Virus record (IMG/VR): IMGVR_UViG_3300019776_000324
Coordinates: 248,001 to 312,000 of that record
Direction: 5' to 3' (one strand)
Length of the DNA: 64,000 nt
This document shows positions 20,048 to 39,378 of the stretch, piece after piece (position 1 is the stretch's first letter; each line of letters starts with the position of its first letter). The notes beneath the pieces are model-generated. The model did not search any database. It saw only the letters and a list, made by a program, of their open reading frames with translations, and was not told the origin of the DNA. Made by a program: the position numbers and the translations under genes.

Positions 20048-20836
20048 ATGAATAACTATTACCAAACCTTGGGTGTCAATCGTGATGCCAGCGCCGACGA
20101 AATCAAGCGAGCTTATCGCAAGCTGGCCAGCCAACATCATCCTGACAAAGGTGGCGATAAAACCCGTTTTCAAGAAATACAAAAGGCCTATGAAATCCTA
20201 GGCGATCCACAAAAGCGAGCACAGCACGATAATCCAATGAGTCAGGGCCGTGGATTTAATTTTAATGTCAACAACGGTCAATTTGATTTTGAATCTATAT
20301 TTGATATTTTTGGTGCTCGTTTTCACCATCCTGGTCAACAGCGTCAAAAACAACGAGCCATGATGAGCTTGTGGATTACTCTGCGTGATGCAGTAGTAGG
20401 CGGACAACGCACAGTAAGCATAGGCACACAGCAAGGCACACAAGCAGTAGAAATAGATATCCCGCCAGGAATAAACGAAGGCGAAAGCATTCAGTATCCA
20501 GGAATTGGACCAGGCGGTATTGATTTGATTATTACTTTTAGAGTACACCCAGATCCCAAGTGGGCTCGTCAAGGGCTTACCTTACATACAGAACACCCAG
20601 TTTCTGTTTGGGATCTTATACTAGGTTGTGAAACACCCATTAGAGATATTAATGGTAATGCCTTGAGTTTGACCATTCCTGCTGGCACACAGCCCGGAAC
20701 CATGTTAAGATTGCGTGGCCGTGGAATCACAACAAAACAAGGGCAATCGGGCGACCTGCTGGTTTTGATACAAGCCCGTTTACCAGACAACATTCCAGAA
20801 GAATTACTAACCCAAATTCGCCAAAATCGCAACTAA
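20048..20836 (+). CDS. dnaJ: DnaJ/CbpA-class co-chaperone (no Zn finger)
   Basis: J domain YYQTLGV..IKRAYRKLA..HHPDKGG; DnaJ C-terminal domain. Confidence 0.92.
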   Translation: MNNYYQTLGVNRDASADEIKRAYRKLASQHHPDKGGDKTRFQEIQKAYEILGDPQKRAQHDNPMSQGRGFNFNVNNGQFDFESIFDIFGARFHHPGQQRQKQRAMMSLWITLRDAVVGGQRTVSIGTQQGTQAVEIDIPPGINEGESIQYPGIGPGGIDLIITFRVHPDPKWARQGLTLHTEHPVSVWDLILGCETPIRDINGNALSLTIPAGTQPGTMLRLRGRGITTKQGQSGDLLVLIQARLPDNIPEELLTQIRQNRN

Positions 20837-20852
20837 TAAGTATTCATATAGA

Positions 20853-20881
20853 TTGCATTTTAATTCGATACATAGTATAAT
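20853..20881 (+). promoter_or_regulatory. sigma70-type promoter TTGCAT-17-TATAAT for clpA
   Basis: 17-nt spacer, consensus -10. Confidence 0.6.
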
Positions 20882-20911
20882 AGTGGTACAGGATATTATT
20901 TAAAGGAAGCT

Positions 20912-23191
20912 ATGCAAAACAATCCAGAAATCGAACAAATAGTTGAATCCGCAGTTAAAATTGCCCGTGATCTCAAACACGAGTATGTTTTAACCGAACA
21001 TGTGTTATTGGCATTGATTCGCTATAATCCGTTTAATAAAGTTTTAGAAAAATTTGGCACTGACATTACCATGTTAGACGCCGAGCTCGAATCATATCTG
21101 CATAGCCTAACCAGCTTGGTCACGGACAAGAATGTCCAGCCTAAAAAGACCAATGCACTTGAACGCTGTTTTAATCGTGCCATGACACAGGTTCTGTTTA
21201 CAGGCCGTCGCACAATGACCACAGCTGACTTGTACCTAGCAATGATGGCTGAAAACAATAGCCACGCACACTACTACTTGTTAAAGTACGGTATCAAGAA
21301 ACAGGAGTTTATGGATTTCTGGAACACCAACTACAATCAAGCAGATGCAGTAATCAGCGATCAACAAGCCAACGAAATCCTAACTGAACATTGTACTAAC
21401 CTTACCAAGTTGGCCAATGAAGATCGACTAGAACCAATGATTGGCCGTAGTGACGAACTACAAGAAATGATCACTGTACTAGCCCGTAGATTCAAACCCA
21501 ATGTGATCATGGTAGGTGATCCTGGTGTAGGTAAAACTGCCATCATCGAAGGACTTGCACAAGAAATTGCACAGGGCCGTGTACCTGAGTTTATTCGAGA
21601 CAACGAAGTATGGTCATTAGAAATTGGATCATTGCTTGCTGGTAGCAAATACCGTGGTGAGTTTGAAGAAAAGTTCAAGCAAGTTATCCAAGCATTAGAA
21701 GCCAAGAAGAATTGTATCTTGTTTATTGACGAAGCACACACTATGATGGGTGCTGGTAGTTCCAGCAACAGTAGTCTGGACTTTGCCAACATGCTAAAGC
21801 CGGCTATTACCAAAGGCAACATCAAGGTTGTAGCAAGTACAACTTGGGAAGAATACTACGAGAGCTTTGAAAAGGATCGTGCCCTGATGCGTCGCTTCCA
21901 TCGTGTCAGCATCGACGAGCCAAGCAATGAAGTTACTGAACAGATTCTTATTGGACTCAGTCCACGCTTGGAAAAGTTCCACAATGTGTTAATTGACACT
22001 GATGCTATCACAGCCGCAGTCGAACTGAGTGGCCGCTATATCCATGATCGTAAGAACCCAGACAAGAGTATTGACTTGATTGACGGTGCTTGTGCCAAAG
22101 AGCGTGTAAAAGATCAAGGCAATGTTACTGTTACTCGTGATATGATCATGGCACAGTTGAGTCGTGTAACTGATGTTCCGGTTGATCGACTACAAAATGA
22201 GCGCAGTGCTAATATCCTTGAGCTTGATAGCAATATCAAACAACGCTTGTATGGACAAGATAGCGCAGTAGACGCAGTGCTAGAGCGTGTGTATATCAAC
22301 TTCTCGGGCATTGGCAACAACAAGCGTCCTATTGCCAGCTTCTTGTTCTTAGGACCCACAGGTACAGGTAAAACAGAACTGGCCAAGTTGCTGGCTGAAA
22401 ACTTGGATATGAAACTGCTCAAGTATGACATGAGTGAGTATCAAGAAAAGCACACAGTAAGTAGCTTGATTGGTGCGCCTCCGGGCTATGTGGGCTTTGA
22501 AGATGGCAATGTGGGCGGTGGTAAACTCATCAGTGATGTAAGCAAGAACCCATTTAGTATCTTGTTGTTTGATGAAATTGAAAAGGCTCATCCAGATGTA
22601 ACCAATATCATGTTACAAATGCTAGACGAAGCCCGCATCACAAGTAGCAACGGTAAAACTGTAGATCTCAAGAACTGCATTATTATCATGACCAGTAACT
22701 TGGGTGCCCGCGACAACGAACAAAACAACATTGGCTTTGGACAAAGTTTAGAAAAGACCGGTAGTGAAGATAAAGCAATGAAGGACTTCTTCAAGCCAGA
22801 GTTGCGTAATCGTATTGATCAAGTATGTAAATTTGTCAAACTCGACAGCTTGGCTGTTAAGAAAGTTGTTGTTAAATTTGTTGATGAACTTAAAGTTAGT
22901 TTAGAAGCCAAGAACATTCGTTTAACTTTGACTGAATCTGCTATTGAGTTACTAGCAGAGCAGGGTTACGATAACAAGATGGGTGCTCGTCCGTTAAGTC
23001 GTAAAATTGACGAACTTATCCGTGTGCCATTGAGTAAGCGTATATTGTTTGATCAACTTGAAAATTGCACAATTCATGTGGTCACTCGTGATGGTGCTAT
23101 TGACTTTGTTACTGATGATCCAAACAGTGTACAACCTGTGGTAAACGAGGATGGGTATATAGTTCTTGACCAATTTAAACCTAACATTTAA
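20912..23191 (+). CDS. clpA: ATP-dependent Clp protease ATP-binding subunit ClpA
   Basis: Clp N-domain, two AAA+ modules (GDPGVGKT, GPTGTGKT), IGF ClpP-docking loop, GARPL; no ClpB M-domain. Confidence 0.93.
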   Translation: MQNNPEIEQIVESAVKIARDLKHEYVLTEHVLLALIRYNPFNKVLEKFGTDITMLDAELESYLHSLTSLVTDKNVQPKKTNALERCFNRAMTQVLFTGRRTMTTADLYLAMMAENNSHAHYYLLKYGIKKQEFMDFWNTNYNQADAVISDQQANEILTEHCTNLTKLANEDRLEPMIGRSDELQEMITVLARRFKPNVIMVGDPGVGKTAIIEGLAQEIAQGRVPEFIRDNEVWSLEIGSLLAGSKYRGEFEEKFKQVIQALEAKKNCILFIDEAHTMMGAGSSSNSSLDFANMLKPAITKGNIKVVASTTWEEYYESFEKDRALMRRFHRVSIDEPSNEVTEQILIGLSPRLEKFHNVLIDTDAITAAVELSGRYIHDRKNPDKSIDLIDGACAKERVKDQGNVTVTRDMIMAQLSRVTDVPVDRLQNERSANILELDSNIKQRLYGQDSAVDAVLERVYINFSGIGNNKRPIASFLFLGPTGTGKTELAKLLAENLDMKLLKYDMSEYQEKHTVSSLIGAPPGYVGFEDGNVGGGKLISDVSKNPFSILLFDEIEKAHPDVTNIMLQMLDEARITSSNGKTVDLKNCIIIMTSNLGARDNEQNNIGFGQSLEKTGSEDKAMKDFFKPELRNRIDQVCKFVKLDSLAVKKVVVKFVDELKVSLEAKNIRLTLTESAIELLAEQGYDNKMGARPLSRKIDELIRVPLSKRILFDQLENCTIHVVTRDGAIDFVTDDPNSVQPVVNEDGYIVLDQFKPNI

Positions 23192-26605: not shown

Positions 26606-26633
26606 GAGCCGCTTTGATAGCGGCTTTTGTTTT
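26606..26633 (+). terminator. Intrinsic terminator
   Basis: GAGCCGCT-TTGAT-AGCGGCTT followed by TTGTTTT. Confidence 0.75.
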
Positions 26634-26649
26634 ACAAATAAATACATCT

Positions 26650-29600
26650 ATGAACATTCTTGAATTAGATTCCTATAATCTTGCTGACGCAGTTAAATTT
26701 AATAAAACATTAAATCCTAAAATCTGGGCTGGCGAAACAATGCGCCCCGAAGTTAGAGAAAAGCTATTAGCTATTGCTGAGGATTTTAAAGAATTTCTAG
26801 GCTTAAGTGACATTGAAGTCAAAGACATTACAGTGTCTGGCAGTAATGCCAACTACAGCTATACACCATACAGTGATATTGACTTGCATTTGGTAGTTGA
26901 TATTCCCCGTGCAGACAATGATGAAGTTTATCGTGAATTGTTTGATGCTAAAAAATATCAATACAACGATTTACATGATTACAAAATTGGCGGTTACGAT
27001 GTTGAGTTGTATGTAGAAAACGCAAACGAACCTCCTGTTTCTAAAGGTGTATACTCTATATTAAACAGCGACTGGATAAATATTCCTCGCAAGATTCGCA
27101 GTGAAGTCAACGACAATGCAGTTCGTAGCAAGTACGAAGATCTAAAACACCGTATTGACAATGCCATTGCTAGTGATGATTCTCAAGTGATTGATCGCTT
27201 GGCCAAGAAAATTAAAGATCTGCGTCAAGCAGGACTAGATGCACATGGCGAACTAGGAGCAGAAAATCTTGCTTATAAAATGTTACGCACACAGGGCAAG
27301 ATTAAAGAATTATACGATGCTCGTAATGCAGCCAAAGATCAAGAATTAAGTTTAAAAGAACGAGCACCAAAAGAAAAATTCACTTATGGATTTAAAGAAG
27401 ATGTTGGTATGAGCTGGGACGGAGTTAGTCCTACAACCAAAATGTTCTTGAGTGAAGAACCACCCGAACTCACAGACGAAGAAGTACTACGAGATTTTAT
27501 TAAATTCTGCGTTCAAGAATTAAAAATTGAAGCATTACCCAAAGTCAAGTTGCGCAGAGATCCACAGTGGAGTGTGCGTAACAAAACATTTGGTCGTTAT
27601 ATCAACGACATTCATACCTTGGAAGTGGCATTTGGTCAACGACACATCATGGATGTGCTCCGTACAGTGGCACACGAATTAACACACAAACATCAACACG
27701 AGCGTGACGGTGCCAAGATGGGTGCAGATGCAGGTGAAACTGGCAGTCCATGGGAAAATGAAGCCAATGCCCGTGCTGGTATTCTAATGCGTGACTATGG
27801 TCGACTACATCCAGAATTGTTTGATAGTAGCCAAACTGAATTGGGCGAAAGTGCCAGCGGTTATATTCCTACTAAGAAACAGGCCAACGATCCTCGTTTC
27901 AAAATGGCACTTACCAAAGATATTCGTCCGGGACAACTAGGCAAAGAAGCAAACAAATTAAAATTAAAGACAGACAGTCAGGGTCATCCACAAATAGCTA
28001 ACCCAAATGGCCTGTTTGAAAAACTAGCATTAGAATTAAATCAGTTCAAGCGCCGTGGTACTGTATTAGAGTCTGAGCAGTTGGATGAAGTTAGTATGCG
28101 TCCCAGCAGTCTTAAACAGTTTGCCAACAGCGAAGAAGCCAAGGGCATACAAGCTGGCTTTGAAGCAGAATTAATTTTCCGTGACACTACCAGCGATGAA
28201 AATGATGGCGAGGACATGGAACCTGACTATGACATGGACGAGCGTTGCCGTAGCATTAGTCAAGTTGTAGAGTTTTTCCAAGATGACGAATACGGATACG
28301 GATTAACTGAGCGTCAAGCTTCACGCTTACAAGACAGCTTGGACGAACAGTACATGGAGTGGTCAGACGAGCAAATGTACGACGCCTGGCGCGATGAGCG
28401 TGATGAATTGATTAAAGATGCGTGGTTGCGTGAAAAATCAATGGACGAGCGCATTCATGCTGCCCTAGTAGACGGATTAGATTTAACAGATGCGCAAGCC
28501 GATGCTGTTGTTAAACTGCACGATGATCGTGCCAGTGGCAAAATCAAAGGCAGTGAAATGAGCGATGAGCAGTTGGAGATGGCCAGCCAGTACAGCGAAG
28601 CTGTTTCCATTGCTGAAGATATTTTACAAGAAGATGTTGAACAAACCATAGAAAAAGAAGATGGTTTCTATGATGAAGTCTTAGATGATTTCCGCAGTAA
28701 TTTTTATGTTGATGATGATTCGGGCTTTTTTGATGATGTTGGCCTGCGCTGGATGAGTGATGTTGCTAACTCATATGACTTGGGTTGGCCTTATCTAACT
28801 GGCGGTGGCGGCAATGATGGCTCACGCAGTTGGGAAGAAATTGGCGATAGTTTACAACAAGCTGTTGATATGCCGGTTAAAGTAAGTAGCGGATATCACA
28901 GTGCTACACGCAAACCAGGTTTGTGGATTGTAGAACCAGACTCTAGTTTAGAACCAGATGATCGTGAAGATTATGGTTTAGAAATTGTAAGCCCTCCTAT
29001 GCCGTTGGAGCAGGCTTTAGAAAAATTAAAACAAGTTGCTGACTGGGCCAACCGCGAGGGTGATGCTTATACCAACAGTTCAACTGGCTTACATATGGGC
29101 GTAAGTGTACCTTACAAAGGTGGTGATGTTGACTACTTAAAGTTGATCCTGTTCCTAGGCGATGAGTATGTGTTAAAATCATTTGGTCGTCAAGCCAACA
29201 CCTATACCAAGAGTGCAATGAGCAAGTTTAAAGAAAACATCAAAGGTGGCCGTACTGATCCAATGAGCGTGATCAAACTCATGCAACACGGCCTGCTTGA
29301 GTTGGCACAGCGTGAAGTACAAAAAGGTGTTGGTGAAGGCAAGTATACCAGTGCTCACAAACAAAACAAATATATTGAATTCCGTAGTGCCGGAGGAGAT
29401 TGGTTAGCAGGTACCAATCCAATGCTAGGCGAAGCTGATGATGGATTTGTCGCTGGTAGTATGGACAAATTACAAAACACCATGATGCGCTATGCCTATG
29501 CCATGTATCTGGCAAGTCGTCCAGATCTTGAGCGCAGAGAATATGCTAAAAAGTTATACAAGCTAATTGCTCCCGAAGGCGATAGTCAACTGGCCCTGTT

Positions 29601-30849
29601 TAGTCAGTATGCTGCAGGCGAGCTCACAGCTGAGCAACTCAAAAAGCAATGGGCCGAAAAGACCATTGGCAAAGAAAAGAAAATGAACCAGCGTTGGAAA
29701 CTGTTCCAATTTGATAAAGTTGCTGACCAATGGTTGCCTGTCCCGGGTGCTGAGTGGAACGGTTACACTGAAGATCAAGTTAAAAATGCAGTATGGAGCA
29801 AGTATGGTCGCGAAGCATTAGACTCAGGTGAGTATGAATTACGCAACATGAGTGAAGATCAACAGTGGGAAGTCTACGATGTCAACACCGGTGATGTTCT
29901 TGAAATTGTTAAAGGCAAGAACAAAGGCGAAGTTGCTGACAAAGTGTACGACAAGTATAAGGATCAAGGAATAGGATTCAATGTTCGTCCGTATGAGGAT
30001 CCAACTACATTGACTCCTCGTGCCAAGTTAGCCAAGCGTATCGCTCAACCCAAGCAAGAACCTGACCAGACTGTAGATATGACGCCCGGTAATTGGGAAT
30101 TTTTCTACGAACCAACTGGACGAGTACTTGACGCAGTCTCTGGCGTTAGCACAACTCAAGCTAGAGCTGTGCTGGCTGATGTTCAACGCCGTTATAATGA
30201 TTTGGCCGCACCTAGTATTAAGATGCGTAAAACTGGTGAAGCCGCACCGGATGTAGCACAAAACTTTAGTCAAAATCCTAACCCAACAGCACCTATAGCC
30301 AATCAAGTGCGTATGCCTAACGGTGTGCCTGTTTGGGAATTGTTTGATATTGATACTGGCAGTGCCTTACATGCTATTGCTGATCATACTGGTCGCGAAG
30401 CATATACTCAAGGCATGGCATGGTTGCGCTCAGTTGGTGCTGAAAATCCAGAAACATACGGCGAGCGTTTTGCTATTCGTCCCAAGCGTTTACAACCAGG
30501 AGAACAAAATTTATCAGCTCCGCAAGATGCTACACAACGAGTAGGATCCTGGAGCATATATGATGTTACCTTAGGAAGAGAAATCAGTAGAATGGACGAT
30601 GTTTCGTTCGCACAGGCTGATGCTCGTGCTAATGAATTAGAGCGTAGCACTGGACATAACATGTCAGTTAGAGGTTTATCTGAGAACTTTGCCGATGGCA
30701 AGGGTCCCGGTCGCCCAGGAGATAGTCAGCGTCACGGAATACCTAAAGGTGCTACTATAGCTGAGTTAGAAAAAGCAGCTAAAGCACCAGGTCGTAAAGG
30801 ACAATTGGCCCGTTGGCAGTTAAATATGCGTAGAGGAAAGAAAAAATGA
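26650..30849 (+). CDS. Polyvalent protein: Pol-beta-type nucleotidyltransferase + HExxH metallopeptidase + putative amidoligase + small modules
   Basis: GSNA..SDIDLH; VAHELTH..E.EANA; GFEAE..EPDSSL..GLEIVSPP..STGLH..IEFRS. Start MNILE 5 nt after TAAATA. Confidence 0.8.
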   Translation: MNILELDSYNLADAVKFNKTLNPKIWAGETMRPEVREKLLAIAEDFKEFLGLSDIEVKDITVSGSNANYSYTPYSDIDLHLVVDIPRADNDEVYRELFDAKKYQYNDLHDYKIGGYDVELYVENANEPPVSKGVYSILNSDWINIPRKIRSEVNDNAVRSKYEDLKHRIDNAIASDDSQVIDRLAKKIKDLRQAGLDAHGELGAENLAYKMLRTQGKIKELYDARNAAKDQELSLKERAPKEKFTYGFKEDVGMSWDGVSPTTKMFLSEEPPELTDEEVLRDFIKFCVQELKIEALPKVKLRRDPQWSVRNKTFGRYINDIHTLEVAFGQRHIMDVLRTVAHELTHKHQHERDGAKMGADAGETGSPWENEANARAGILMRDYGRLHPELFDSSQTELGESASGYIPTKKQANDPRFKMALTKDIRPGQLGKEANKLKLKTDSQGHPQIANPNGLFEKLALELNQFKRRGTVLESEQLDEVSMRPSSLKQFANSEEAKGIQAGFEAELIFRDTTSDENDGEDMEPDYDMDERCRSISQVVEFFQDDEYGYGLTERQASRLQDSLDEQYMEWSDEQMYDAWRDERDELIKDAWLREKSMDERIHAALVDGLDLTDAQADAVVKLHDDRASGKIKGSEMSDEQLEMASQYSEAVSIAEDILQEDVEQTIEKEDGFYDEVLDDFRSNFYVDDDSGFFDDVGLRWMSDVANSYDLGWPYLTGGGGNDGSRSWEEIGDSLQQAVDMPVKVSSGYHSATRKPGLWIVEPDSSLEPDDREDYGLEIVSPPMPLEQALEKLKQVADWANREGDAYTNSSTGLHMGVSVPYKGGDVDYLKLILFLGDEYVLKSFGRQANTYTKSAMSKFKENIKGGRTDPMSVIKLMQHGLLELAQREVQKGVGEGKYTSAHKQNKYIEFRSAGGDWLAGTNPMLGEADDGFVAGSMDKLQNTMMRYAYAMYLASRPDLERREYAKKLYKLIAPEGDSQLALFSQYAAGELTAEQLKKQWAEKTIGKEKKMNQRWKLFQFDKVADQWLPVPGAEWNGYTEDQVKNAVWSKYGREALDSGEYELRNMSEDQQWEVYDVNTGDVLEIVKGKNKGEVADKVYDKYKDQGIGFNVRPYEDPTTLTPRAKLAKRIAQPKQEPDQTVDMTPGNWEFFYEPTGRVLDAVSGVSTTQARAVLADVQRRYNDLAAPSIKMRKTGEAAPDVAQNFSQNPNPTAPIANQVRMPNGVPVWELFDIDTGSALHAIADHTGREAYTQGMAWLRSVGAENPETYGERFAIRPKRLQPGEQNLSAPQDATQRVGSWSIYDVTLGREISRMDDVSFAQADARANELERSTGHNMSVRGLSENFADGKGPGRPGDSQRHGIPKGATIAELEKAAKAPGRKGQLARWQLNMRRGKKK

Positions 30850-31397
30850 GAGCTAGTGATTTTATAACAGAAGCAGTTAAACAACGCTTGGATCCCAAGT
30901 GCTGGAAGGGCAAGCACAAAGAAGGCACCAAAGTAAAAGGTGGTGTTAGAGTTAACAACTGTGTGCCCAACGAAAGTGTTGAACTAGATGAAGAATTTGA
31001 TCTTATCGAAAGCATTATTGAAACACTAGCTGAACGCAATCAAGTTGATGCTGAAGCTATCTGGGAAGATCTAGAGTCATTAACTGATGATGAGCTGTAT
31101 GTGTTTGCTACTACAACTCCAGTCATGGAAGATTGGCAAAAAGTCAATAAGAAGGACAAAACAGATGGCATGAGTACAAAAGCTGTTAAGGCCTATCGTC
31201 GTGAACATCCTGGTTCAAAGTTAAAGACTGCTGTGACTACCAAGCCCAGCAAGTTAAAGAAGGGTAGTAAAGCCAGCAAGCGTCGTAAGAGTTATTGCTC
31301 ACGCTCAAAGGGTCAAATGAAAATGCACAACATCAGCTGTGCGAAAACTCCAGATAAAGCTATCTGCAAAGCCCGCCGTCGTTGGAACTGTGAATGA
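30846..31397 (+). CDS. Putative head-internal protein with basic Cys-containing modules
   Basis: MRASDFITEA leader; CWKG..NCVP and RRKSYC.RS.GQ..ICKARRRWNC. Confidence 0.65.
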   Translation: MRASDFITEAVKQRLDPKCWKGKHKEGTKVKGGVRVNNCVPNESVELDEEFDLIESIIETLAERNQVDAEAIWEDLESLTDDELYVFATTTPVMEDWQKVNKKDKTDGMSTKAVKAYRREHPGSKLKTAVTTKPSKLKKGSKASKRRKSYCSRSKGQMKMHNISCAKTPDKAICKARRRWNCE

Positions 31398-33385
31398 GAT
31401 TTAAGGAATTTGTCACAGAATACAGCCAGCTAAAAACACAGCGGGCTCATCGTGATGGCTTAGATCTTGAGGTTCGTAGTAATGATGAAAATGTAAGCAT
31501 CTATGCTTATGCCAATGGTAAAGAACTTGCCCATGTGCATTTTGATCGAGTTGGTAACAATATTCTACCATATGATTTAGAAGTGGGCGAACACTATCGC
31601 GGTCAAGGTATTGCTAGTGTAATGTATGATTATGCCAAAGAGTTAGGCTATACAATAAAACGCAGTAGCGAGCAAACAGATGCAGGTCGTGCATTCTGGA
31701 ATAAGAATCGCGGTGAAGAAGGAAACATTTGGGAAGATAAAACACTAGATCCTGAGATCTATGGTGAGATGCTTCCCACCTCCACAGTCAAGCGCATTGT
31801 TACCAGTGTAATGAAACAAGTAGATCCTACAGCTAAAGTCACAGTTAAACAAAGTCCAGAAGGTTACTATAATGTTAATAGTGACAAACTTAGATTAGAC
31901 TTTGGTATCACTGCTGATGGTGGCGAGATCAATGCCAACATTGTTAATGCTTATAGTAGTTACAAGGGTGCTGGTGTTGTTACTAACATATTTGCTCAAT
32001 GCTTTAAGGCCGCAGAACAACTATGGGGCAAGCCCGCTAAGTTTGTTATGAGTGCTCACGAAGATCGTGGACACGGAGTATGGCAACACATAGCACAGAA
32101 ACTAGGTGCTGAGTGGCAAGGTAGCATAAGTGAAATAGCCCGCATACCAAATGATTACTATTCTGGAGGTAAAGAATCGTTACCCATTAACCCATCTGCT
32201 AGAAAATCCCAAATAAAACCGTTACCAGGTGGCAGTGGATTTGGATATTATACTCGCGAAGCGCCTGGTAGTATCATTATTTACATTGTGGATCCTAACA
32301 AGCCAGCTGAGCAACGAGATAATAAAAATGATATTATTGTAGCCATGTTAAGTTTAGATAAATGTCAATGGATTCCTGGTGCCTATACAGTTAATTCAGT
32401 CACTACAGACGAGGCGTATCGAGGTCGTGGACTTGGACATAGTTTGTATGGTATAGCATTATCAATCTTAGGTCTTACATTAGTTTCTGGAACCGAACAA
32501 ACATCTAGTGGTAGAAGTATGTGGAAAACAATAAGCAATTTTCCTGGAGTAGACATTAAAGGTTATACCAAAGCAACAGATAATCAAGCAAAACAACTAT
32601 TAAAACAAAATGGTGCTCAACCACTTACCGGAGACTATTGGACTTTTCCTATCAAACAAGGTAAACACGAACTTAAAAGCACCATACCGGATGTGCCAAC
32701 ATATCATACTCAATTTGCTAAAGATGTGCCGTACCACAAAATCTATAGAACTGGTCTAATTGCCAAGTGGAATCCAGGTCGAACTAATACTGTAAATGAA
32801 ATAGCCCGCATACCACAAAGCGAACTAGGTGACTGGGGAGAAGAAGGAACTATTGTTCCACCAGAACATCCAGTAGAAAAGAAGCCATTGCCTGGCGGCA
32901 GTAAGTTTACCTATGCTGTAGATAAAAACAGCCAGGGCAATCTAGAAATACTAATATTCGATGGCGAAAAGTTAGCTGCCGAATTAGACTTGTTTGAAAC
33001 AGGTGATGTGCTGAACACTTGGGGTGTAGAAACTATTGTAGTTGAACGCCCATATCGTGGACAGGGGTTGGGCAAAGCCTTATATGGTATTGCCTTAAGC
33101 ATACTAAAACTTACCATAGAAGCTGGCTCAACACAAACACGACATGGCCAACAGATGTGGTTAATGCTTAACAGTATTCCAGGAGTAGAAGTCAAAGGCT
33201 ACACTATGGTTCCTACTGCCAAGTATCAACCTAACAAGAATGATACCATTGTCAAGCAAGACAAAGACTGGACTCGTTATACATTCCCGGTTCATCCAGG
33301 AAAACAAAGTATGCGTAGTGGTCGCCCAGGTGCTGGACTTTATACTAGTCAAGCAACTATGATAGCTAAATGGACAGGTAAATGA
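31394..33385 (+). CDS. Tandem GNAT-acetyltransferase polyprotein (4 domains)
   Basis: Acetyl-CoA motif A: YRGQGIA (31595), YKGAGV (31961), YRGRGLG (32417), YRGQGLG (33053); three are followed by QT..G...W. Confidence 0.8.
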   Translation: MRFKEFVTEYSQLKTQRAHRDGLDLEVRSNDENVSIYAYANGKELAHVHFDRVGNNILPYDLEVGEHYRGQGIASVMYDYAKELGYTIKRSSEQTDAGRAFWNKNRGEEGNIWEDKTLDPEIYGEMLPTSTVKRIVTSVMKQVDPTAKVTVKQSPEGYYNVNSDKLRLDFGITADGGEINANIVNAYSSYKGAGVVTNIFAQCFKAAEQLWGKPAKFVMSAHEDRGHGVWQHIAQKLGAEWQGSISEIARIPNDYYSGGKESLPINPSARKSQIKPLPGGSGFGYYTREAPGSIIIYIVDPNKPAEQRDNKNDIIVAMLSLDKCQWIPGAYTVNSVTTDEAYRGRGLGHSLYGIALSILGLTLVSGTEQTSSGRSMWKTISNFPGVDIKGYTKATDNQAKQLLKQNGAQPLTGDYWTFPIKQGKHELKSTIPDVPTYHTQFAKDVPYHKIYRTGLIAKWNPGRTNTVNEIARIPQSELGDWGEEGTIVPPEHPVEKKPLPGGSKFTYAVDKNSQGNLEILIFDGEKLAAELDLFETGDVLNTWGVETIVVERPYRGQGLGKALYGIALSILKLTIEAGSTQTRHGQQMWLMLNSIPGVEVKGYTMVPTAKYQPNKNDTIVKQDKDWTRYTFPVHPGKQSMRSGRPGAGLYTSQATMIAKWTGK

Positions 33386-34113
33386 CAACAGTTACCGGTG
33401 GCGTAGTAACAACTGATGGTGCATATACTGTACGCACTTTTGAAACCTCTGGCACATTAACTGTGTCTGGCGGAACATTAACTGATGTGCAATACTTGTT
33501 GATTGCTGGCGGCGGTCGTGCCGCAGTTCCAACTAGTTCCTATGTGGCCGGTGGAGGTGCTGGTGGTGCTCTAACAGGCAACATTACTCTTAATGCTGGT
33601 ACATATCCTGTAGTCATAGGTGAAGCTACAATAAGTAGTGCTTTTAATGATCTTGTAACTATACCCGGCGGCACAGGAGGATTTTATGGTAATGGATTCT
33701 CAGGTGGTTCAGGTGGTGGTGGTGGAGTAATAGGTGTTACTCATATAAATTTTCAGAACTTTGTTGCTGGCAATGGCACACCCGGACAAGGACATGCAGG
33801 GGGCAATCCCTATGGTGGTGGATATCCACCATTTGGCCCAGGTGGCGGTGGTGGTGCATCAGGACCCGGTGGACAAGGCAGTGCTGACGGAGTTGGTGGT
33901 GCAGGTGGCCCAGGCTTAGCCAGCGATATAACTGGTAATACTGTTTATTATGCAGGTGGCGGTGCTGGCAAAGGACCCAAAGGTATTGGGAATAATAGCC
34001 CCGGATACGACAACTACGGAGCTGGCGGTGGTTACTCAAGCACGGTAAATAATAACTACGGAGAGTTACTATCTCCACAACCCGGAGTGTTGATTTTAAG
34101 GTACCTAACATGA
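33382..34113 (+). CDS. Glycine-rich domain protein (phage virion-associated type)
   Basis: YTV.TF..SG.L, YL.IAGGG, GGGAGG, YYAGGGAG, GV.ILRY. Confidence 0.7.
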   Translation: MTTVTGGVVTTDGAYTVRTFETSGTLTVSGGTLTDVQYLLIAGGGRAAVPTSSYVAGGGAGGALTGNITLNAGTYPVVIGEATISSAFNDLVTIPGGTGGFYGNGFSGGSGGGGGVIGVTHINFQNFVAGNGTPGQGHAGGNPYGGGYPPFGPGGGGGASGPGGQGSADGVGGAGGPGLASDITGNTVYYAGGGAGKGPKGIGNNSPGYDNYGAGGGYSSTVNNNYGELLSPQPGVLILRYLT

Positions 34114-34322
34114 GATTTCAAGAAATAGTCGAAGCTAAAAACACAAATCCTATTGTAAATTACAATTTGTGGACAGCACAGGTACAGATCAAACAACCTA
34201 ACTATGTTGGCCGTATTGATGTTACTGTAACTGCTGCCAACGCACAAGATGCTCGCTTGTTAATGAAATCACAGTATGGTGTTGAATTTTGGCAAATTGG
34301 CAGTGTTAAACAAGTAAAATGA
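34110..34322 (+). CDS. Small putative head-internal protein
   Basis: MRFQEIVEA leader; V.A.N..DAR..K.QYG. Confidence 0.6.
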   Translation: MRFQEIVEAKNTNPIVNYNLWTAQVQIKQPNYVGRIDVTVTAANAQDARLLMKSQYGVEFWQIGSVKQVK

Positions 34323-34681
34323 GACTCAAAGAATTCGAACAAAAAGGCACTGATGCTGAACATGTGCTTGCTTATGTAAACAGCATACATCACGGCTTCA
34401 ATATTCCTGATACTATTTTAAATCACCCACAATGGCGCAAGACTCGTGTGCCACTAAACAAGCTACATATTCCCGACGAAGAAGGCGAAGACCTAGAAGA
34501 TCCGTACAATCGAGTACAGTGGATTGACTATGATCAAGTTAAAAGCGTTGATCGCCAATACATTGAAACACATCCTATTGTAGTAGACACCAATGGGCAT
34601 ATTATCGACGGTAATCACCGTGCTATAGCCGCTAAACTAGGCGGCATGTTTGACATTCCGGCATACATACCCACCAAATAA
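34319..34681 (+). CDS. ParB/sulfiredoxin-like domain protein
   Basis: PIVV....IIDGNHR..AA..G...IPAY. Confidence 0.75.
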   Translation: MRLKEFEQKGTDAEHVLAYVNSIHHGFNIPDTILNHPQWRKTRVPLNKLHIPDEEGEDLEDPYNRVQWIDYDQVKSVDRQYIETHPIVVDTNGHIIDGNHRAIAAKLGGMFDIPAYIPTK

Positions 34682-34699
34682 TATACAGCTAAATACAGC

Positions 34700-34993
34700 A
34701 TGGATAAGAAATTTGTGCGAGTATTAGCTGATGTACATTGCGAATGGGAAGGCCTAGATCCTATCTATCGTTTGTATGTTAATGACGAACTATTTGCCGA
34801 GCGCACATGGACATGGGCCAGTGCTTATCTTGAAGAAAATCTACAAATTGAAGCTGAACCCGGCGAATATACTATACGCTACGAATTAGTACAGCCGCAT
34901 CTAGCTGAATTAAAAGTAGAAAATATCCGTGTTGATTTTGGACCCGGAGTTATAGAAAATAATGTACTAAGGATTACCAATGAGACTGTATGA
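34700..34993 (+). CDS. Hypothetical protein
   Basis: TAAATA 4 nt upstream; YRLYVNDELF.ERTW. Confidence 0.65.
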   Translation: MDKKFVRVLADVHCEWEGLDPIYRLYVNDELFAERTWTWASAYLEENLQIEAEPGEYTIRYELVQPHLAELKVENIRVDFGPGVIENNVLRITNETV

Positions 34994-35180
34994 ATTTGTT
35001 AACTTGACTGAAGAAGCAAGTGCTTGTAGCACCACAGCAGGCAGTATTGCTCCGGTAAGTTCACCCATTGGTGGAATGGTCGCAAGAAATGCAGGATCTT
35101 TCTTTGCTGGTAAATACACTACTGACGATGCAACGCCTAATACGCCTGCAGAGTACAAAAAGTATAAACGGAAGAAATAA
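34980..35180 (+). CDS. Small putative head-internal protein
   Basis: MRLYEFVNLTEE leader; basic C-terminus. Confidence 0.6.
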   Translation: MRLYEFVNLTEEASACSTTAGSIAPVSSPIGGMVARNAGSFFAGKYTTDDATPNTPAEYKKYKRKK

Positions 35181-35620
35181 TGTTAGCTGATTTATTAAAA
35201 ACTTACTTGGCCAGTACATTTTCGTACTATTTAAAAGCCCACATGTTCCATTGGAATGTGGAAGGTCCAGACTTTGGCGAACTACATGGTTTCTTTTCAC
35301 AAATTTATGAAGATGCGTTTGATGCAGTAGATCCTATTGCTGAATTTATCCGTACTGCAGAAGAATATGCCCCAGGAAGCCTAACCCGCTTTCATGAATT
35401 AACACAAATACAGGACCAAACCAAGGTCCCTCGTGCCCGATTAATGTTAGAAGAATTACTCGCAGATACACAGACCATGAAAGATCTAAGCAAACAAGTG
35501 TTTGATGTTTCAACCCAAGAAGGTCGTGATGATGTTGCAAACTTTGCCGCAGATAGACTAAGCCAACACGGCAAGTACATGTGGCAACTTAAGAGTTATT
35601 TGAAAGACGCTAGGGCATGA
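35180..35620 (+). CDS. dps: Dps family ferritin-like DNA-protection protein
   Basis: K.H.FHWNVEG..F.ELH..F..IYE.....D.IAE; H.KY.WQL. Confidence 0.92.
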   Translation: MLADLLKTYLASTFSYYLKAHMFHWNVEGPDFGELHGFFSQIYEDAFDAVDPIAEFIRTAEEYAPGSLTRFHELTQIQDQTKVPRARLMLEELLADTQTMKDLSKQVFDVSTQEGRDDVANFAADRLSQHGKYMWQLKSYLKDARA

Positions 35621-35623
35621 TCA

Positions 35624-36244
35624 ATGCAAGACCATAACGATATATACTCCATTGTAGAACGCCTCCGTATGTTGGAGGAAGGTCTTGACAAGAATCAAAA
35701 GAGTGTCAATCAACTCAGTGCCACATTTAAACCAAAAACAGTAGCAGTACTCACAGCCAAAACAGATCCTAAAAATCCTCTAGCCGGCAAGCTGGTTGGT
35801 GGCGCAGAAGAAAGCGTAGAGTCCGACGAAGAGCCATTGGAAGAAGCTATTACTAGCGAAGATGTGCTGGACAAAGTTAAAAAATCATTTGCTGATTATC
35901 TAAGTAATATAGCAGATGAAATCAAACAAGATTCCGATCTCAAAGACAAGAAAAAAGAAGATACTGATCTAAAGCAAAAAGAAAAGAAGGATCGTGATCT
36001 TGTTTCTAAACAAATCGATGAACATGGTACTAATCTTCCAGAAGCAGTCAAATGTGTCACTATGGAAGATGGTCGCGTTTGTGAAATACACGGCGATGAC
36101 AACTCTGGGTTTGAGATCCACCACGGTAACCGTAGTTTACCAACAAGATTTAAAGATTTAGCTGAAGCCGAAATGGCTTTAGAAATGTTTATGAGTCGTC
36201 GTCGTAAGACTGACGAAGCACAAGATTATATTGAAGAAGCTTAA
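35624..36244 (+). CDS. Hypothetical acidic/charged protein
   Basis: 206-aa ORF ending DYIEEA. Confidence 0.65.
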   Translation: MQDHNDIYSIVERLRMLEEGLDKNQKSVNQLSATFKPKTVAVLTAKTDPKNPLAGKLVGGAEESVESDEEPLEEAITSEDVLDKVKKSFADYLSNIADEIKQDSDLKDKKKEDTDLKQKEKKDRDLVSKQIDEHGTNLPEAVKCVTMEDGRVCEIHGDDNSGFEIHHGNRSLPTRFKDLAEAEMALEMFMSRRRKTDEAQDYIEEA

Positions 36245-36256
36245 GGAAAAAAAGAA

Positions 36257-38758
36257 ATGAATTTGTTAAACCTATTTGAAGGACGCGAACCGCATCAACA
36301 AGCTATTGACAAGCTGGAACAGGCTCGTATTGATCACTTAAAAGAAAAAATGGATTACTATGCTAAACACGGCATGGTAGAACAATTCAAAAAAGCCAAA
36401 GCTGAACACGACAGTTATTTTAAAGTTCAAGATGAGTGCATGGGATATGGTAGTGTTGTTGGCGAACAAGGCATTCCTGGTTCAGTACCAACAGAAAAGA
36501 TTCCTGGCAAAGAAGACTTACTCCGAGGCAAGGGTCGTAGCTACTACGAATCAGTCGAAGAAGTTAATCCAAGTAAAAAAGTATTCAAAGACAAAGCTGG
36601 TAAACCAGTAGGAGAGATTGGTATTGATCCTGAATCAAGTCCTGGCAATAGCGAATGGTATGTATATCATTACGGCACAGGTTATAGTGTTGTTGGATTC
36701 GATAGTGCCGCAGAAGCTAAACGCGAATTAATGTATGTTCACAAGCATCCAGAAGCGGTCGAAGGGCACGAATCAACATTTGACGAAGCTGGTATTCCTG
36801 GTAATGTTCCAGTTGAAAAGATTCCAGGTAAAGAAGATTTGCTAAAGGGCAAGGGTCGTAGCTACTACGAAGCCCAAGACCAAAAAAAAAATTCTGAAGA
36901 AGTAGATAAGCTACAAACAGCTGCAAGAGAGTTTATAGAATTAATAAACGATCGCACTGGTCCTATCTATAAAGCATATTATCGTAGTTTTCCAAAAGGT
37001 TCTGCACTAGAAGCAGAACTGCGTAAACGCATTGCCGCCAAGTATGGCGTTGCAGAAAAAGAACTTGCTAACGCCGAAGCTGGCGATCGTGCTCGTCGCA
37101 TGTTTGGTAATAAACTCAATGAAGATCAAAAGTTACATGTAGGTGATCCTATCATTGTTACAGCTCCTAATGAGTTTGAAGGCAAGACTGGTGAGATTGC
37201 AGAGTTCAGCCCAAGTGGCGCATTTGTTGTTGTAAACTTATACAACCACGGTGAACACAGCATGCACCTGAGTGATGTTGAGTTTAATCAATATGCCGCA
37301 GATCAAGAAGATGAAGATGACTGGTACGACGACGGTGCAGAAGATACATTAGAAGAAGAACAAAAAGAATTCCTGTACACAGTTGAATGCGATGGCTACA
37401 ACAAAGGTAACTTTGTTAATAAAAACGACGCAATCTTTAGTGCTCAGTACATGATCTACTATGGCGAAAAAGAATATAACAAGATTGAAGTTATTGAACT
37501 TAAAACAGGTGATGTAATCTGGGAATGGCATGGCAAGAAAGCAGACAACGATGTTGCTCCTACAGAAGTAGAAGTAGGTGAAGGTTGGAGCAACAAGATG
37601 GTTGCTCAAAGAACCGGTCAAGCTCCAACACCATATTCAGTTTATATCAAAGGTAAAGAATGGAAGAGCTTTGCTGACGATGATCATGCTGAAAATGTAG
37701 CTAACAAGTTAAGAGCTAAATTCAAAGCAGAAGGTAAAGATCCTAGTGTTATTACTATTGCACCTACTGACTACGATAAAGATCTTAAAGAATTCGCACC
37801 AGGTGGCGGATATCAAGAACCACCTCCACCAGTATTAAAGAAAAAAGATCCGTTTGATGACGATGATCGTAGTATCTATCCACGCAAGATTCAACAACTA
37901 TTAACCAGTGGTGCTAAAGTAGATAGCCGTGTTCCTGGTGCTATGGGACACATTATTGCAGCTAATGGCGAAATGATTAGAATGAAGCCATTGAACAAGC
38001 CATACAGCCAAAAGAAATATGCTTGGTATATTGATCAAGAGCGTGATGATAAACTTTTATTAAAGCAAGTTGAACCTAACCATTATGTATTGTATGATCG
38101 TGATTGGTTGCCACAAGGCACAACAGAGGCTGCTAATCCAGCACAACAGGCCGCTATTGCCGTTGCTATGAAGAAGGCTGGCAAGAAACCTAAGAGTGTT
38201 GATGAAGGTATCATGGATGTTGTTAAACAAACATTCAACGACAATGTAGTAGGTTGGCCAATGGGCACTTCTACTGAACAGTTTATACAAGGTTGGGCTA
38301 GAGATATTAAAAATCGCACAGGAAAAAATGTTCCAGTAGAAAAGTTAACACAGTTGTACAATAACTATGTTAAGCGTTCTGGTGAACTTATGCAATCACA
38401 TGGCACCACTAACGAAGCTGAAACAGATTATTCTAAGCGTCGCCAGCGTGAGCGTGATGTAGATGCAGGTAAGCCCGTAGCAAAACAGCGCCAACCCAAG
38501 ATGACTGATTATCAAAAGCGCCGTGCTCAGCAGAAGAAAGAAATGGAACTAGGCGAGGATCAAGACACTAGTGGTGTTGAGAGCGCAATTATTCGTCGTA
38601 TTATGGTAGCACACACAGACTTGTTACAACAGTTTGGCCCAGAAAAAGTCATGCAGGCCGCAGAAGAAGTTGCTTACAATGTAGGCGATGTTGACGAAAT
38701 TGGTACCAGTGATGTCAGTGCTTGGGTACACGAAGTCAAACAAATCCTTGGTGCCTAA
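36257..38758 (+). CDS. Modular polyprotein-like head protein
   Basis: MNLLNLFEG leader; many short modules separated by xxE junctions; duplicated 27-aa unit; KOW/SH3-like module LHVGDPIIV..GK.G.I. Confidence 0.65.
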   Translation: MNLLNLFEGREPHQQAIDKLEQARIDHLKEKMDYYAKHGMVEQFKKAKAEHDSYFKVQDECMGYGSVVGEQGIPGSVPTEKIPGKEDLLRGKGRSYYESVEEVNPSKKVFKDKAGKPVGEIGIDPESSPGNSEWYVYHYGTGYSVVGFDSAAEAKRELMYVHKHPEAVEGHESTFDEAGIPGNVPVEKIPGKEDLLKGKGRSYYEAQDQKKNSEEVDKLQTAAREFIELINDRTGPIYKAYYRSFPKGSALEAELRKRIAAKYGVAEKELANAEAGDRARRMFGNKLNEDQKLHVGDPIIVTAPNEFEGKTGEIAEFSPSGAFVVVNLYNHGEHSMHLSDVEFNQYAADQEDEDDWYDDGAEDTLEEEQKEFLYTVECDGYNKGNFVNKNDAIFSAQYMIYYGEKEYNKIEVIELKTGDVIWEWHGKKADNDVAPTEVEVGEGWSNKMVAQRTGQAPTPYSVYIKGKEWKSFADDDHAENVANKLRAKFKAEGKDPSVITIAPTDYDKDLKEFAPGGGYQEPPPPVLKKKDPFDDDDRSIYPRKIQQLLTSGAKVDSRVPGAMGHIIAANGEMIRMKPLNKPYSQKKYAWYIDQERDDKLLLKQVEPNHYVLYDRDWLPQGTTEAANPAQQAAIAVAMKKAGKKPKSVDEGIMDVVKQTFNDNVVGWPMGTSTEQFIQGWARDIKNRTGKNVPVEKLTQLYNNYVKRSGELMQSHGTTNEAETDYSKRRQRERDVDAGKPVAKQRQPKMTDYQKRRAQQKKEMELGEDQDTSGVESAIIRRIMVAHTDLLQQFGPEKVMQAAEEVAYNVGDVDEIGTSDVSAWVHEVKQILGA
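36470..36871 (+). repeat. Duplicated 81-nt/27-aa unit GIPG.VP.EKIPGKEDLL.GKGRSYYE
   Basis: Copies at 36470-36550 and 36791-36871; last 24 nt identical. Confidence 0.9.
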
Positions 38759-39378
38759 TGAGAGCAGAAGAGTTCACAGTTAGTCTAGACGAAAAATTAG
38801 ATGAAATTCTAGTTCGTCTCTGTGAACTTGTAGTTCAAGGTCAAAAAGAAAATCAAGACCTAGGCATGGTGGCTGCCGCTGTATTAGATCCCGATGATAA
38901 TTGTGTAACAGGTATTAACTATCCTGCACGAGATGGTAAGCGTGTTCATGCCGAGCGTGCCGCTATAAACAACTATATTGATCGTTTTGGCCCTGTTCCT
39001 CCTGGCAGTATTGTTATTACAACATTAAGTCCATGCAATCAAGATATGGATAGTCGAGCAGGAGAAAGTTGTCAAGCGTTATTAGATCAACACGGCATTG
39101 ATTCAGTTTACTGTGGTTATGTTGATCCTACACAAGATAAGCATCAAGTCGGCTTAACTGCTAATAAAAAAATACAAGCATTGTGTAAAGCATTCGCTGA
39201 CACTTTTCTTAAAGACAAACTAGACGAACTTGAATTTTTAGGTAGCCCTTGCACCAAAGACTGTTCAGGTCATCGTGCCGGATATGCATGGGCACAAAGC
39301 AAAGGCGGTCGTGTTGCTAACAGTCCATTTAGTCCTAGCTTTAATAACGGCAGTCAGCTTTATGTTGATGGTAAGTAA
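38758..39378 (+). CDS. Zn-dependent cytidine/dCMP-deaminase-fold protein with C-terminal small Cys module
   Basis: VHAERAA and TLSPC..(10)..C; start MRAEEF (TAATG coupling). Confidence 0.8.
   Translation: MRAEEFTVSLDEKLDEILVRLCELVVQGQKENQDLGMVAAAVLDPDDNCVTGINYPARDGKRVHAERAAINNYIDRFGPVPPGSIVITTLSPCNQDMDSRAGESCQALLDQHGIDSVYCGYVDPTQDKHQVGLTANKKIQALCKAFADTFLKDKLDELEFLGSPCTKDCSGHRAGYAWAQSKGGRVANSPFSPSFNNGSQLYVDGK

Follow-up and report, generated by a model that had tools for sequence, protein, structure and literature searches.

The closest described counterparts of the gene considered here are the polyvalent proteins, in which disparate enzyme domains are joined in one phage polypeptide (Iyer, Burroughs, Anand, de Souza, Aravind, 2017; PMC5512222), and the internal proteins (IPs) of the phage T4 head, IPI-III and Alt. 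The gene is a 1399-amino-acid (aa) open reading frame (ORF) in a 64,000-nucleotide (nt) stretch of DNA (the window), which corresponds to bases 248001-312000 of the virus record IMGVR_UViG_3300019776_000324, 344,244 bp long and with terminal repeats. The source is an uncultured T4-like jumbo phage with a T4-like capsid protein, prohead protease and family-B DNA polymerase, and by identity of the DNA polymerase its closest cultured relatives are the jumbo phages Phosso and Atu_ph07 (~46-50%), followed by CBB and GAP32 (~44%). We think it rather probable that the gene product is an ejection polyprotein, packaged in the capsid and cut by a prohead protease like T4 gp21.

We class the protein with the polyvalent proteins as Iyer et al. 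understand them, and it resembles the T4 internal proteins as well. It unites more than two disparate domains, namely a nucleotidyltransferase (NTase), a zincin and an amidoligase, plus repeats and a basic peptide, and its genome is that of a portal-terminase phage as judged from the terminal repeats, the T4-like capsid protein, the protease and the polymerase. As in the described polyvalent proteins, the zincin has the core of a metallopeptidase (MPTase) domain (helix, three-stranded sheet, HExxH helix, Glu helix), GNAT, ParB-like, lysozyme and deaminase domains recur in its neighbours and relatives, and delivery with the DNA is predicted (PMC5512222). Unlike in that work, where the word amidoligase is absent from the text (0 occurrences) and processing is ascribed to embedded peptidases, the motif of the T4 prohead protease stands here at the junctions, and cassettes are exchanged precisely there. 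The likeness to T4 lies in the head module and protease, in neighbouring genes that begin with near-copies of the T4 targeting peptide, and in an Alt-like N-terminus; the small basic products would recall IPI-III, and Alt, too, is an enzyme that loses a piece from either end (PMC9026906, PMC5694885). In contrast to the T4 proteins, this one would release several full-size enzymes, and different phages have different sets of cassettes in it. To our knowledge, T4 head proteins lose only short terminal propeptides and give one product per gene.

Two more distant systems bear comparison. In phiKZ-like giant phages (phiKZ, 201phi2-1, SPN3US) many head-internal proteins are cut after Glu by a gp21-like protease, sometimes at multiple sites (PMC5694885), and such short-motif cleavage of a head-internal protein is what we propose here, but their motif is S/A/G-x-E, their propeptides are long, and the proteins are not chains of unrelated, shuffled enzyme cassettes. 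RNA-virus polyproteins follow the same logic, with short conserved cleavage sites that divide a single translation product into independent proteins; there is no homology, however, and the protease that we propose serves capsid maturation and has its gene elsewhere in the genome of a double-stranded DNA phage, and the products would be accessory effectors and not a replication core. We found no description of a prohead-protease-processed effector polyprotein of tailed phages in the open-access literature, and we know of no report of a polyprotein strategy of this kind in these phages.

Glutamate junctions and cassette exchange

The ORF lies on the + strand, with its ATG at 26650 and a TGA stop at 30849, and encodes a protein of 158 kDa with a pI of 5.0. 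Its full-length relatives are located on jumbo-phage contigs; a megablast search of 50,697 phage records with the gene gave no match, and tblastn against cultured phages matched only single modules. The modules and junctions, the latter defined by alignment of homologues, are as follows.

26650-30849, + strand: polyvalent polyprotein ORF, 1399 aa (ORF reading; >1300 full-length relatives)
26650-27360, + strand: module 1, pol-beta NTase with helical domain, aa 1-237, start MNILE5↓L, end LKE237↓ (PHROG 36119, E 1e-40; arrows mark predicted cuts)
27361-27465, + strand: variable linker, aa 238-272, predicted disordered, containing FKE and LSE (predicted local distance difference test, pLDDT, 30-35)
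27466-27849, + strand: module 2, HExxH gluzincin of MPTase type, aa 273-400, end LGE400↓S (invariant residues, model, Foldseek)
27841-27849, + strand: junction A, LGE 398-400, with a cassette of ~60-360 aa directly before it in 61/119 homologues
27850-28071, + strand: module 3, conserved basic module, aa 401-474, pI 10.1, end VLE474↓S (many invariant residues)
28063-28089, + strand: junction B, VLE 472-474 and LDE 478-480, with a cassette directly before it in 47/119 homologues; LDE↓V is invariant
28090-29679, + strand: module 4, Amidoligase_2 with a glutamine-synthetase-like fold, aa 481-1010 (PF12224, AFDB matches, model)
29680-30684, + strand: module 5, five beta-beta-alpha-beta repeats with W-x-[LVI]-[FY]-D, aa 1011-1345, end LSE1345↓N (model)
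30676-30684, + strand: junction C, LSE 1343-1345, with a cassette of up to ~540 aa directly before it in 47/119 homologues
30685-30846, + strand: module 6, basic peptide, aa 1346-1399, 54 aa, pI 11.4, end RRGKKK (83-98% identical across aligned homologues)

The original prediction, made from the DNA sequence of the window, had read 26650-30849 as a polyvalent protein of 1,399 aa whose domain borders coincide with hydrophobic-x-E sites, and the polyvalent nature is borne out, several enzyme domains standing in one real ORF. The motifs that it listed are all present (SDIDLH at aa 75-80, FKE at 248-250, LSE at 267-269, VAHELTH at 340-346, LGE at 398-400, LDE at 478-480, EPDSSL at 762-767, TGLH at 812-815, IEFRS at 909-913, LSE at 1343-1345 and the terminal RRGKKK), and profiles and models uphold its calls of an NTase, a zincin, an amidoligase with an acidic insert, W-motif repeats and a basic end.

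Within this single sequence, the coincidence of borders with such sites carries no meaning, because the bare motif [LIVMF]xE occurs about once per 44 aa; its 32 sites compare with 27.8 +/- 4.3 in shuffled sequences, and an overall enrichment of hydrophobic-x-E in the protein was accordingly rejected. The comparison among homologues is more telling. When insertion hot spots were defined as insertions of at least 30 aa in at least two aligned sequences, a MAFFT alignment of 120 family members (the query and 119 homologues), used together with breaks in BLASTP matches, showed only three, after aa 397 (61 sequences), 468/470 (47 sequences) and 1342 (47 sequences). The protein has just six [LIVMF]xE[SANG] sites, and each hot spot lies 3-4 aa upstream of one of them: LGE400↓S, VLE474↓S and LSE1345↓N, respectively (p about 1e-5). 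The amidoligase contains the other three, of which FKE862 falls in a helix, VGE896 in a loop and LGE928 within an insert that only five homologues have, and none of them serves as an insertion point.

Inserted cassettes begin after an x-x-E and end in an x-x-E directly before homology resumes. At junction C, the residue before the predicted cut (P1) is E in 47 of 47 sequences, and the third residue before it (P3) is L/I/V/M in 98%, across 24 distinct upstream contexts; at junction B, P3 is L/I/V/M in 86%. By sequence matches, the same cassettes occupy different hot spots in different phages, with their breakpoints at Glu. The cassette at spot A of P0093 is that at spot C of P0099, and the one at spot A of P0107 is that at spot B of P0108, in both cases at 94% identity and with homology that stops at the Glu. 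A check proposed along with the original prediction, whether other phages have the segments rearranged, with the breaks falling at Glu sites, is thus answered positively by both the alignments and these cassette matches, and the objection that the Glu sites might be buried in folds does not hold for the AlphaFold models, in which the junctions fall in low-pLDDT linkers (238-272, 392-413, 470-480 and 1342-1351).

As for the predicted borders, those at LGE400, LDE480 (with VLE474 close by) and LSE1345 stand, each lying next to a hot spot, whereas the one between NTase and zincin has to be moved. It had been placed at FKE248 / LSE269 in the linker, which is ruled out by the poor conservation of the Glu residues (E250 of FKE in 4% and E269 of LSE in 51% of homologues). 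The LKE at 235-237 is conserved at this border (E 99%, L 99%), the stand-alone NTase of a Maribacter phage stops 1 aa past the position aligned to aa 235, and in the relative P0165 the NTase ends GLSLTE↓S, with other cassettes next; from these three observations we place the border at LKE237.

The 54-aa C-terminal peptide gives a view of the junctions beyond the immediate family. A profile of the peptide (NFADGKGPGRPGDS...NMRRGKKK), searched against 1.84 billion representatives, retrieved 1329 protein clusters at 50% identity. Among the 148 listed representatives, the residue preceding the peptide is E in 149 of 150 occurrences and P3 is V/L/I/M/F in 136 of 150, with 97 distinct upstream tetrapeptides. 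In 23 proteins the peptide is internal, and another x-x-E then follows within 1-5 residues. Almost always it is the last module, though now and then it stands straight after a targeting-like N-terminus (MKLFELFE↓NFADG in P0146). Its partner cassettes elsewhere include ParB_N, GH19 lysozyme, NT5C, GNAT, DUF5661, DUF6934, winged helix-turn-helix, NTase and zincin. Searching every module by tblastn against the phage's own genome yielded no paralogues, so the peptide is not a shared tag within this genome.

Some members of the family (P0010, P0026, P0055 and others) carry a Sigma70 region 4 cassette at junction A, which hints that an injected fragment may act on the host RNA polymerase.

The prohead protease and competing explanations

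The gp21-family protease that a T4-type internal-protein system calls for is encoded in the genome, in a T4-like head module that comprises an acidic core protein, a Peptidase_S77 protease, a scaffold and a Gp23-type capsid protein. The protease (PF03420, E 6e-24, 82 bits) is 34% identical to T4 gp21 and retains the His and Ser motifs, GE(V/L)xHP and GVSSRG. T4 gp21 cleaves after Glu in L/I-x-E (PMC9026906, PMC5694885). Among 373 ORFs, the enrichment of [LIVM]xE[SANG] is highest in the scaffold homologue (14 vs 3.2 expected, z 6.1), as fits a protein degraded by the prohead protease, and in the capsid protein ILE↓N and LKE↓N take the places of IFE↓N and of the maturation site LTE↓A of T4 gp23.

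The N-termini point in the same direction. T4 IPII and IPIII begin MKTYQEFIAE↓A, and N-termini of this type act as capsid targeting sequences in T4 internal proteins (PMC9026906). The two genes that follow the polyprotein gene, at 30846 and 31394, start MRASDFITE↓A and MRFKEFVTE↓Y, clear counterparts of such a targeting propeptide (~6-19 aa, ending in L/I-x-E); targeting-like N-termini occur in only a handful of ORFs of the genome and are kept in relatives. The relative P0217 has an in-frame fusion of polyprotein and downstream protein, in which LSE↓ takes the place of the targeting peptide, exactly at the predicted cut. The polyprotein itself has the short start MNILE5↓L, in which I3 is conserved in 100% and E5 in 97% of sequences; it is similar to the start of T4 Alt, MELITE↓L, and Alt is cut at ITE-6 and LTE-619 (PMC5694885).

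In the pathway that we propose, the protein would be synthesized late and incorporated into the prohead, where the gp21-like protease would cleave after Glu in [V/L/I/M]-x-E↓[S/N/G/A] linkers, at LKE237, LGE400, VLE474/LDE480, LSE1345 and possibly ILE5. The products would be the nucleotidyltransferase, the small zincin peptidase, the basic 74-aa module, the amidoligase joined to the repeat array, and the 54-aa basic peptide, which would remain in the head with the DNA, be ejected into the host at infection, and serve there as early effectors that modify the host or counter its defences, in the manner of T4 Alt and the internal proteins. We infer each step from packaging through cleavage to ejection, and likewise what the enzymes act on. 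With a protease site flanking every cassette, cassettes could be inserted, lost or moved between genes of this type without disturbing their neighbours, and the protein studied here would belong to a large pool of such polyproteins that recombine within this phage clade.

Several points weigh against this pathway. Packaging and cleavage are events that we infer in an uncultured phage; a precursor of 158 kDa is large for a head internal protein; and the gene lies ~185 kb away from the head module. By sequence, the N-terminus is a 5-residue Alt-like motif and seems to lack the clear 9-10-residue targeting peptide of the neighbours, and since MNILE aligns with stand-alone NTases, it may be a mere part of the NTase fold. 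Junction A with inserts has a hydrophobic P3 in only 51% of cases, Q and T being common, and E in 84%, which may reflect alignment noise or a looser site. Conserved blocks that happen to start with E could, finally, explain part of the Glu conservation.

That the protein acts uncut, as a multi-domain polyvalent enzyme in which x-x-E marks linker or block-edge residues at recombination-tolerant joints, kept for folding or docking, seems to us unlikely, although it has precedents in the N4 virion RNA polymerase and ArdC/TraC1, which are delivered uncut (PMC5512222), and agrees with the lack of enrichment of bare [LIVMF]xE in the protein. It leaves unexplained why a hydrophobic P3 and a Glu at P1 persist behind 97 different upstream sequences, why the 54-aa peptide, where it is internal, has Glu on both sides, why the breakpoint in P0217 falls exactly at a T4-type targeting-peptide cleavage site, and why the motif peaks in the scaffold. 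If the protein is cut, the embedded zincin (aa 273-400) might do so itself, in cis or in trans, before or after delivery. It is intact, with invariant catalytic residues, in every close family member and adjoins junction A, and autoproteolysis by MPTase domains of polyvalent proteins has been proposed (Iyer et al.; PMC5512222). The junction motif does not, however, seem to keep company with an embedded protease in all related polyproteins: relatives such as P0165, P0121 and P0178 share it and appear to be without a zincin (some of them may be fragments), which points to a protease acting in trans. The motif also equals that of T4 gp21 and recurs in the scaffold, the capsid protein and the T4-like targeting peptides, whose T4 counterparts are cut by the prohead protease. 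Self-processing by the zincin is therefore improbable, and we know of no relative of the M78/SprT-like or minigluzincin type with Glu specificity at P1. The apparently zincin-less relatives, the targeting sequences, the scaffold and the capsid protein together make the prohead protease, acting in trans, the likely enzyme.

From the presence of a ligase and a peptidase in one chain, the original prediction had suggested that the two add and remove a tag on a host protein. Amidoligase_2 enzymes have reportedly been proposed, by Iyer and colleagues in Mol Biosyst in 2009, to make peptide or amide tags, and zincin and amidoligase, both with intact residues, always occur together in the close family. 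Nothing else was found in favour of such a pair, neither a shared substrate nor a tag gene nor a precedent; the basic module and two junctions lie between the two enzymes; and in the wider pool zincin and NTase occur in other combinations, P0250 having a zincin and GNAT with no Pfam amidoligase match, and P0165 an NTase and apparently no zincin. This independent recombination of modules argues against an obligate ligase-peptidase pair, and we consider the tagging of one host protein by the two enzymes very improbable.

Returning to cleavage by the prohead protease, a wider and more tentative proposal, which we hold to be possible but doubtful, is that a large uncultured clade of T4-like jumbo phages loads its capsids with plug-and-play effector polyproteins, composed of protease-site-flanked cassettes that are released by head maturation and reshuffled at the sites, with the 54-aa peptide as a common packaging or DNA-binding adaptor. 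The cassette types would be NTase, zincin, amidoligase, GNAT, ParB-like, lysozyme, nucleotidase, sigma region 4 and deaminase.

Should the cleavage be real, tailed phages would use a polyprotein strategy for injected proteins, with the capsid-maturation protease as the release enzyme, and the T4 principle of targeting and processing, already used for protein delivery, would extend to multi-cargo precursors. Effector cassettes would be swapped at the short recognition site of this protease, and the fast evolution of polyvalent proteins would thereby be explained. A targeting peptide followed by [V/L/I/M]-x-E↓ joints would then serve as a sequence rule for finding ejected effectors in uncultured phage genomes, and dozens of unnamed cassettes would become candidate early host-takeover or counter-defence factors. 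Without cleavage, the protein would still represent a well-documented new architecture of polyvalent proteins, the first known to us that combines an amidoligase, an NTase and an MPTase.

The modules of the protein

Module 1 scores slightly below the cut-off for NTP_transf_2 (PF01909; 20.6 bits, cut-off 21), and in the alignment of homologues its GS..DxD motif and third carboxylate are invariant (G64, S65, D76, D78, D117/E119). Its model has weak fold matches to ANT/AadA and to CD-NTases including CdnE (TM score about 0.25). Maribacter, Synechococcus and Lak phages encode the module on its own.

Module 2 is placed among the zincins by its HELTH motif and its modelled fold. The residues H342, E343, H346, E369 and E371, in HELTH and ENEANA, are invariant, and the model, a helix, a three-stranded sheet and two helices, corresponds to the core described for MPTase domains. 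Foldseek matched it to the minigluzincins abylysin and selecase and to SprT-like proteins (probability 0.97-1.0), and to Pfam Peptidase_M78 (ImmA/IrrE) it scores 15.8 bits, below the cut-off of 22. The 74-aa basic module 3 (SASGYIPTKK...) is highly conserved yet predicted to be disordered, without a confident fold.

Module 4 belongs to Amidoligase_2 by the curated cut-off (PF12224, E 6e-9, 36.6 bits against 22) and by its catalytic-type residues, and is a predicted enzyme; E505, E507, E762, E778, H815, E910 and R912 are invariant in 35 sequences. AFDB clusters named 'Amidoligase enzyme' match at probability 1.0. Foldseek of the amidoligase model against the PDB gave only weak matches to glutamine synthetase and McsB. 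An acidic helical insert (aa ~515-725, pI 4.1) separates the first amidoligase strand (GFEAELIF) from the core and is modelled confidently as a helical bundle over aa 554-708.

The number of repeats in module 5 differs between homologues. The repeat region had no match above 0.70 in the ESM Atlas and no family there, and an identity with DUF1508/YegP-like repeats was considered and dropped, Pfam giving it no support. At a loose threshold, Pfam searches with the 74-aa module, each repeat and the end peptide returned nothing credible; an NCBIfam search with the whole protein returned nothing, and profile searches of the PDB with two alignments (A1 and A2) gave no significant match.

The surrounding island and other genome features

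The gene lies in a syntenic island that is conserved in relatives, with island gene lengths that vary strongly between related phages. Upstream of it, and downstream with N-termini of the kind described above, the following features were recognized.

26607-26633, + strand: terminator-like hairpin (stem agccgc/gcggct) with a T-run, closing the upstream gene (read from the sequence)
26638-26644, + strand: ATAAATA box resembling a T4 late promoter, directly after the terminator and 5 nt 5' of the ATG of the polyprotein gene (putative promoter)
30846-31397, + strand: 183-aa protein with a DUF6321 end, start MRASDFITE↓A (T4-targeting-like N-terminus), overlapping the polyprotein stop (ATGA)
31394-33385, + strand: 663-aa protein with GNAT domains at both ends, start MRFKEFVTE↓Y; an internal repeat begins after ISE↓ and VNE↓ (N-terminus, translational coupling)
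34319-34681, + strand: 120-aa protein, start MRLKEF..., with a DGNHR ParB-like motif (N-terminus, synteny)
36257-38758, + strand: 833-aa repetitive protein, start MNLLNLFE↓G, with internal repeats (N-terminus, synteny)
38758-39378, + strand: cytidine-deaminase-like protein, start MRAEEF... (N-terminus, synteny)

Cyanophage homologues of the DUF6321 protein are annotated as structural protein. The genes at 34319-39378 may belong to the same capsid-targeted system and are candidates on the strength of their N-termini and synteny, and the GNAT, ParB-like and deaminase domains of the island are of types typical of polyvalent proteins. Between the listed genes, a glycine-rich protein of 243 aa (33382-34113) has G-G-x-G-type repeats, matches positions 564-804 of the 1183 of PHROG 2295, and in relatives is conserved 3' of the GNAT gene; another protein, 146 aa long (35180-35620), is ferritin-like (PF00210, E 1e-19) and is found at the same position in related phages.

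An alternative TTG start of the polyprotein gene at 26614 was rejected: the extension would overlap the terminator hairpin, and MNILE is the start in most homologues. The ATAAATA box, whose place right before the gene counts in favour of the pathway proposed above, resembles the T4 late promoter TATAAATA and is strongly strand-biased in the genome, with 39 copies on the + strand and 7 on the - strand. Within 50 nt upstream of gene starts there are 27 copies, several of them before large structural-type genes, and one class of boxes ends merely 4-9 nt before the ATG, which would yield near-leaderless transcripts.

Farther upstream, the stretch 20048-23191 holds a Clp-type ATPase of 759 aa with two AAA+ domains (PHROG 4871, 'ATP-dependent protease'); relatives have in the syntenic place a protein with Clp_N and ClpB_D2-small domains. 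Directly 5' of the ATPase gene is a 262-aa ORF, at the position of a DnaJ-like gene in relatives, and the pair is syntenic with the polyprotein locus there. Outside the window, a second cluster (G000:C1:124735-135441) contains small genes starting MKNFKDYLTE↓S, MRAVEFITE↓A and MRAKEFIRE↓D, together with adjoining proteins of 675-685 aa that are enriched in [LIVM]xE[SANG]; the proteins of this cluster are probably further internal head proteins.

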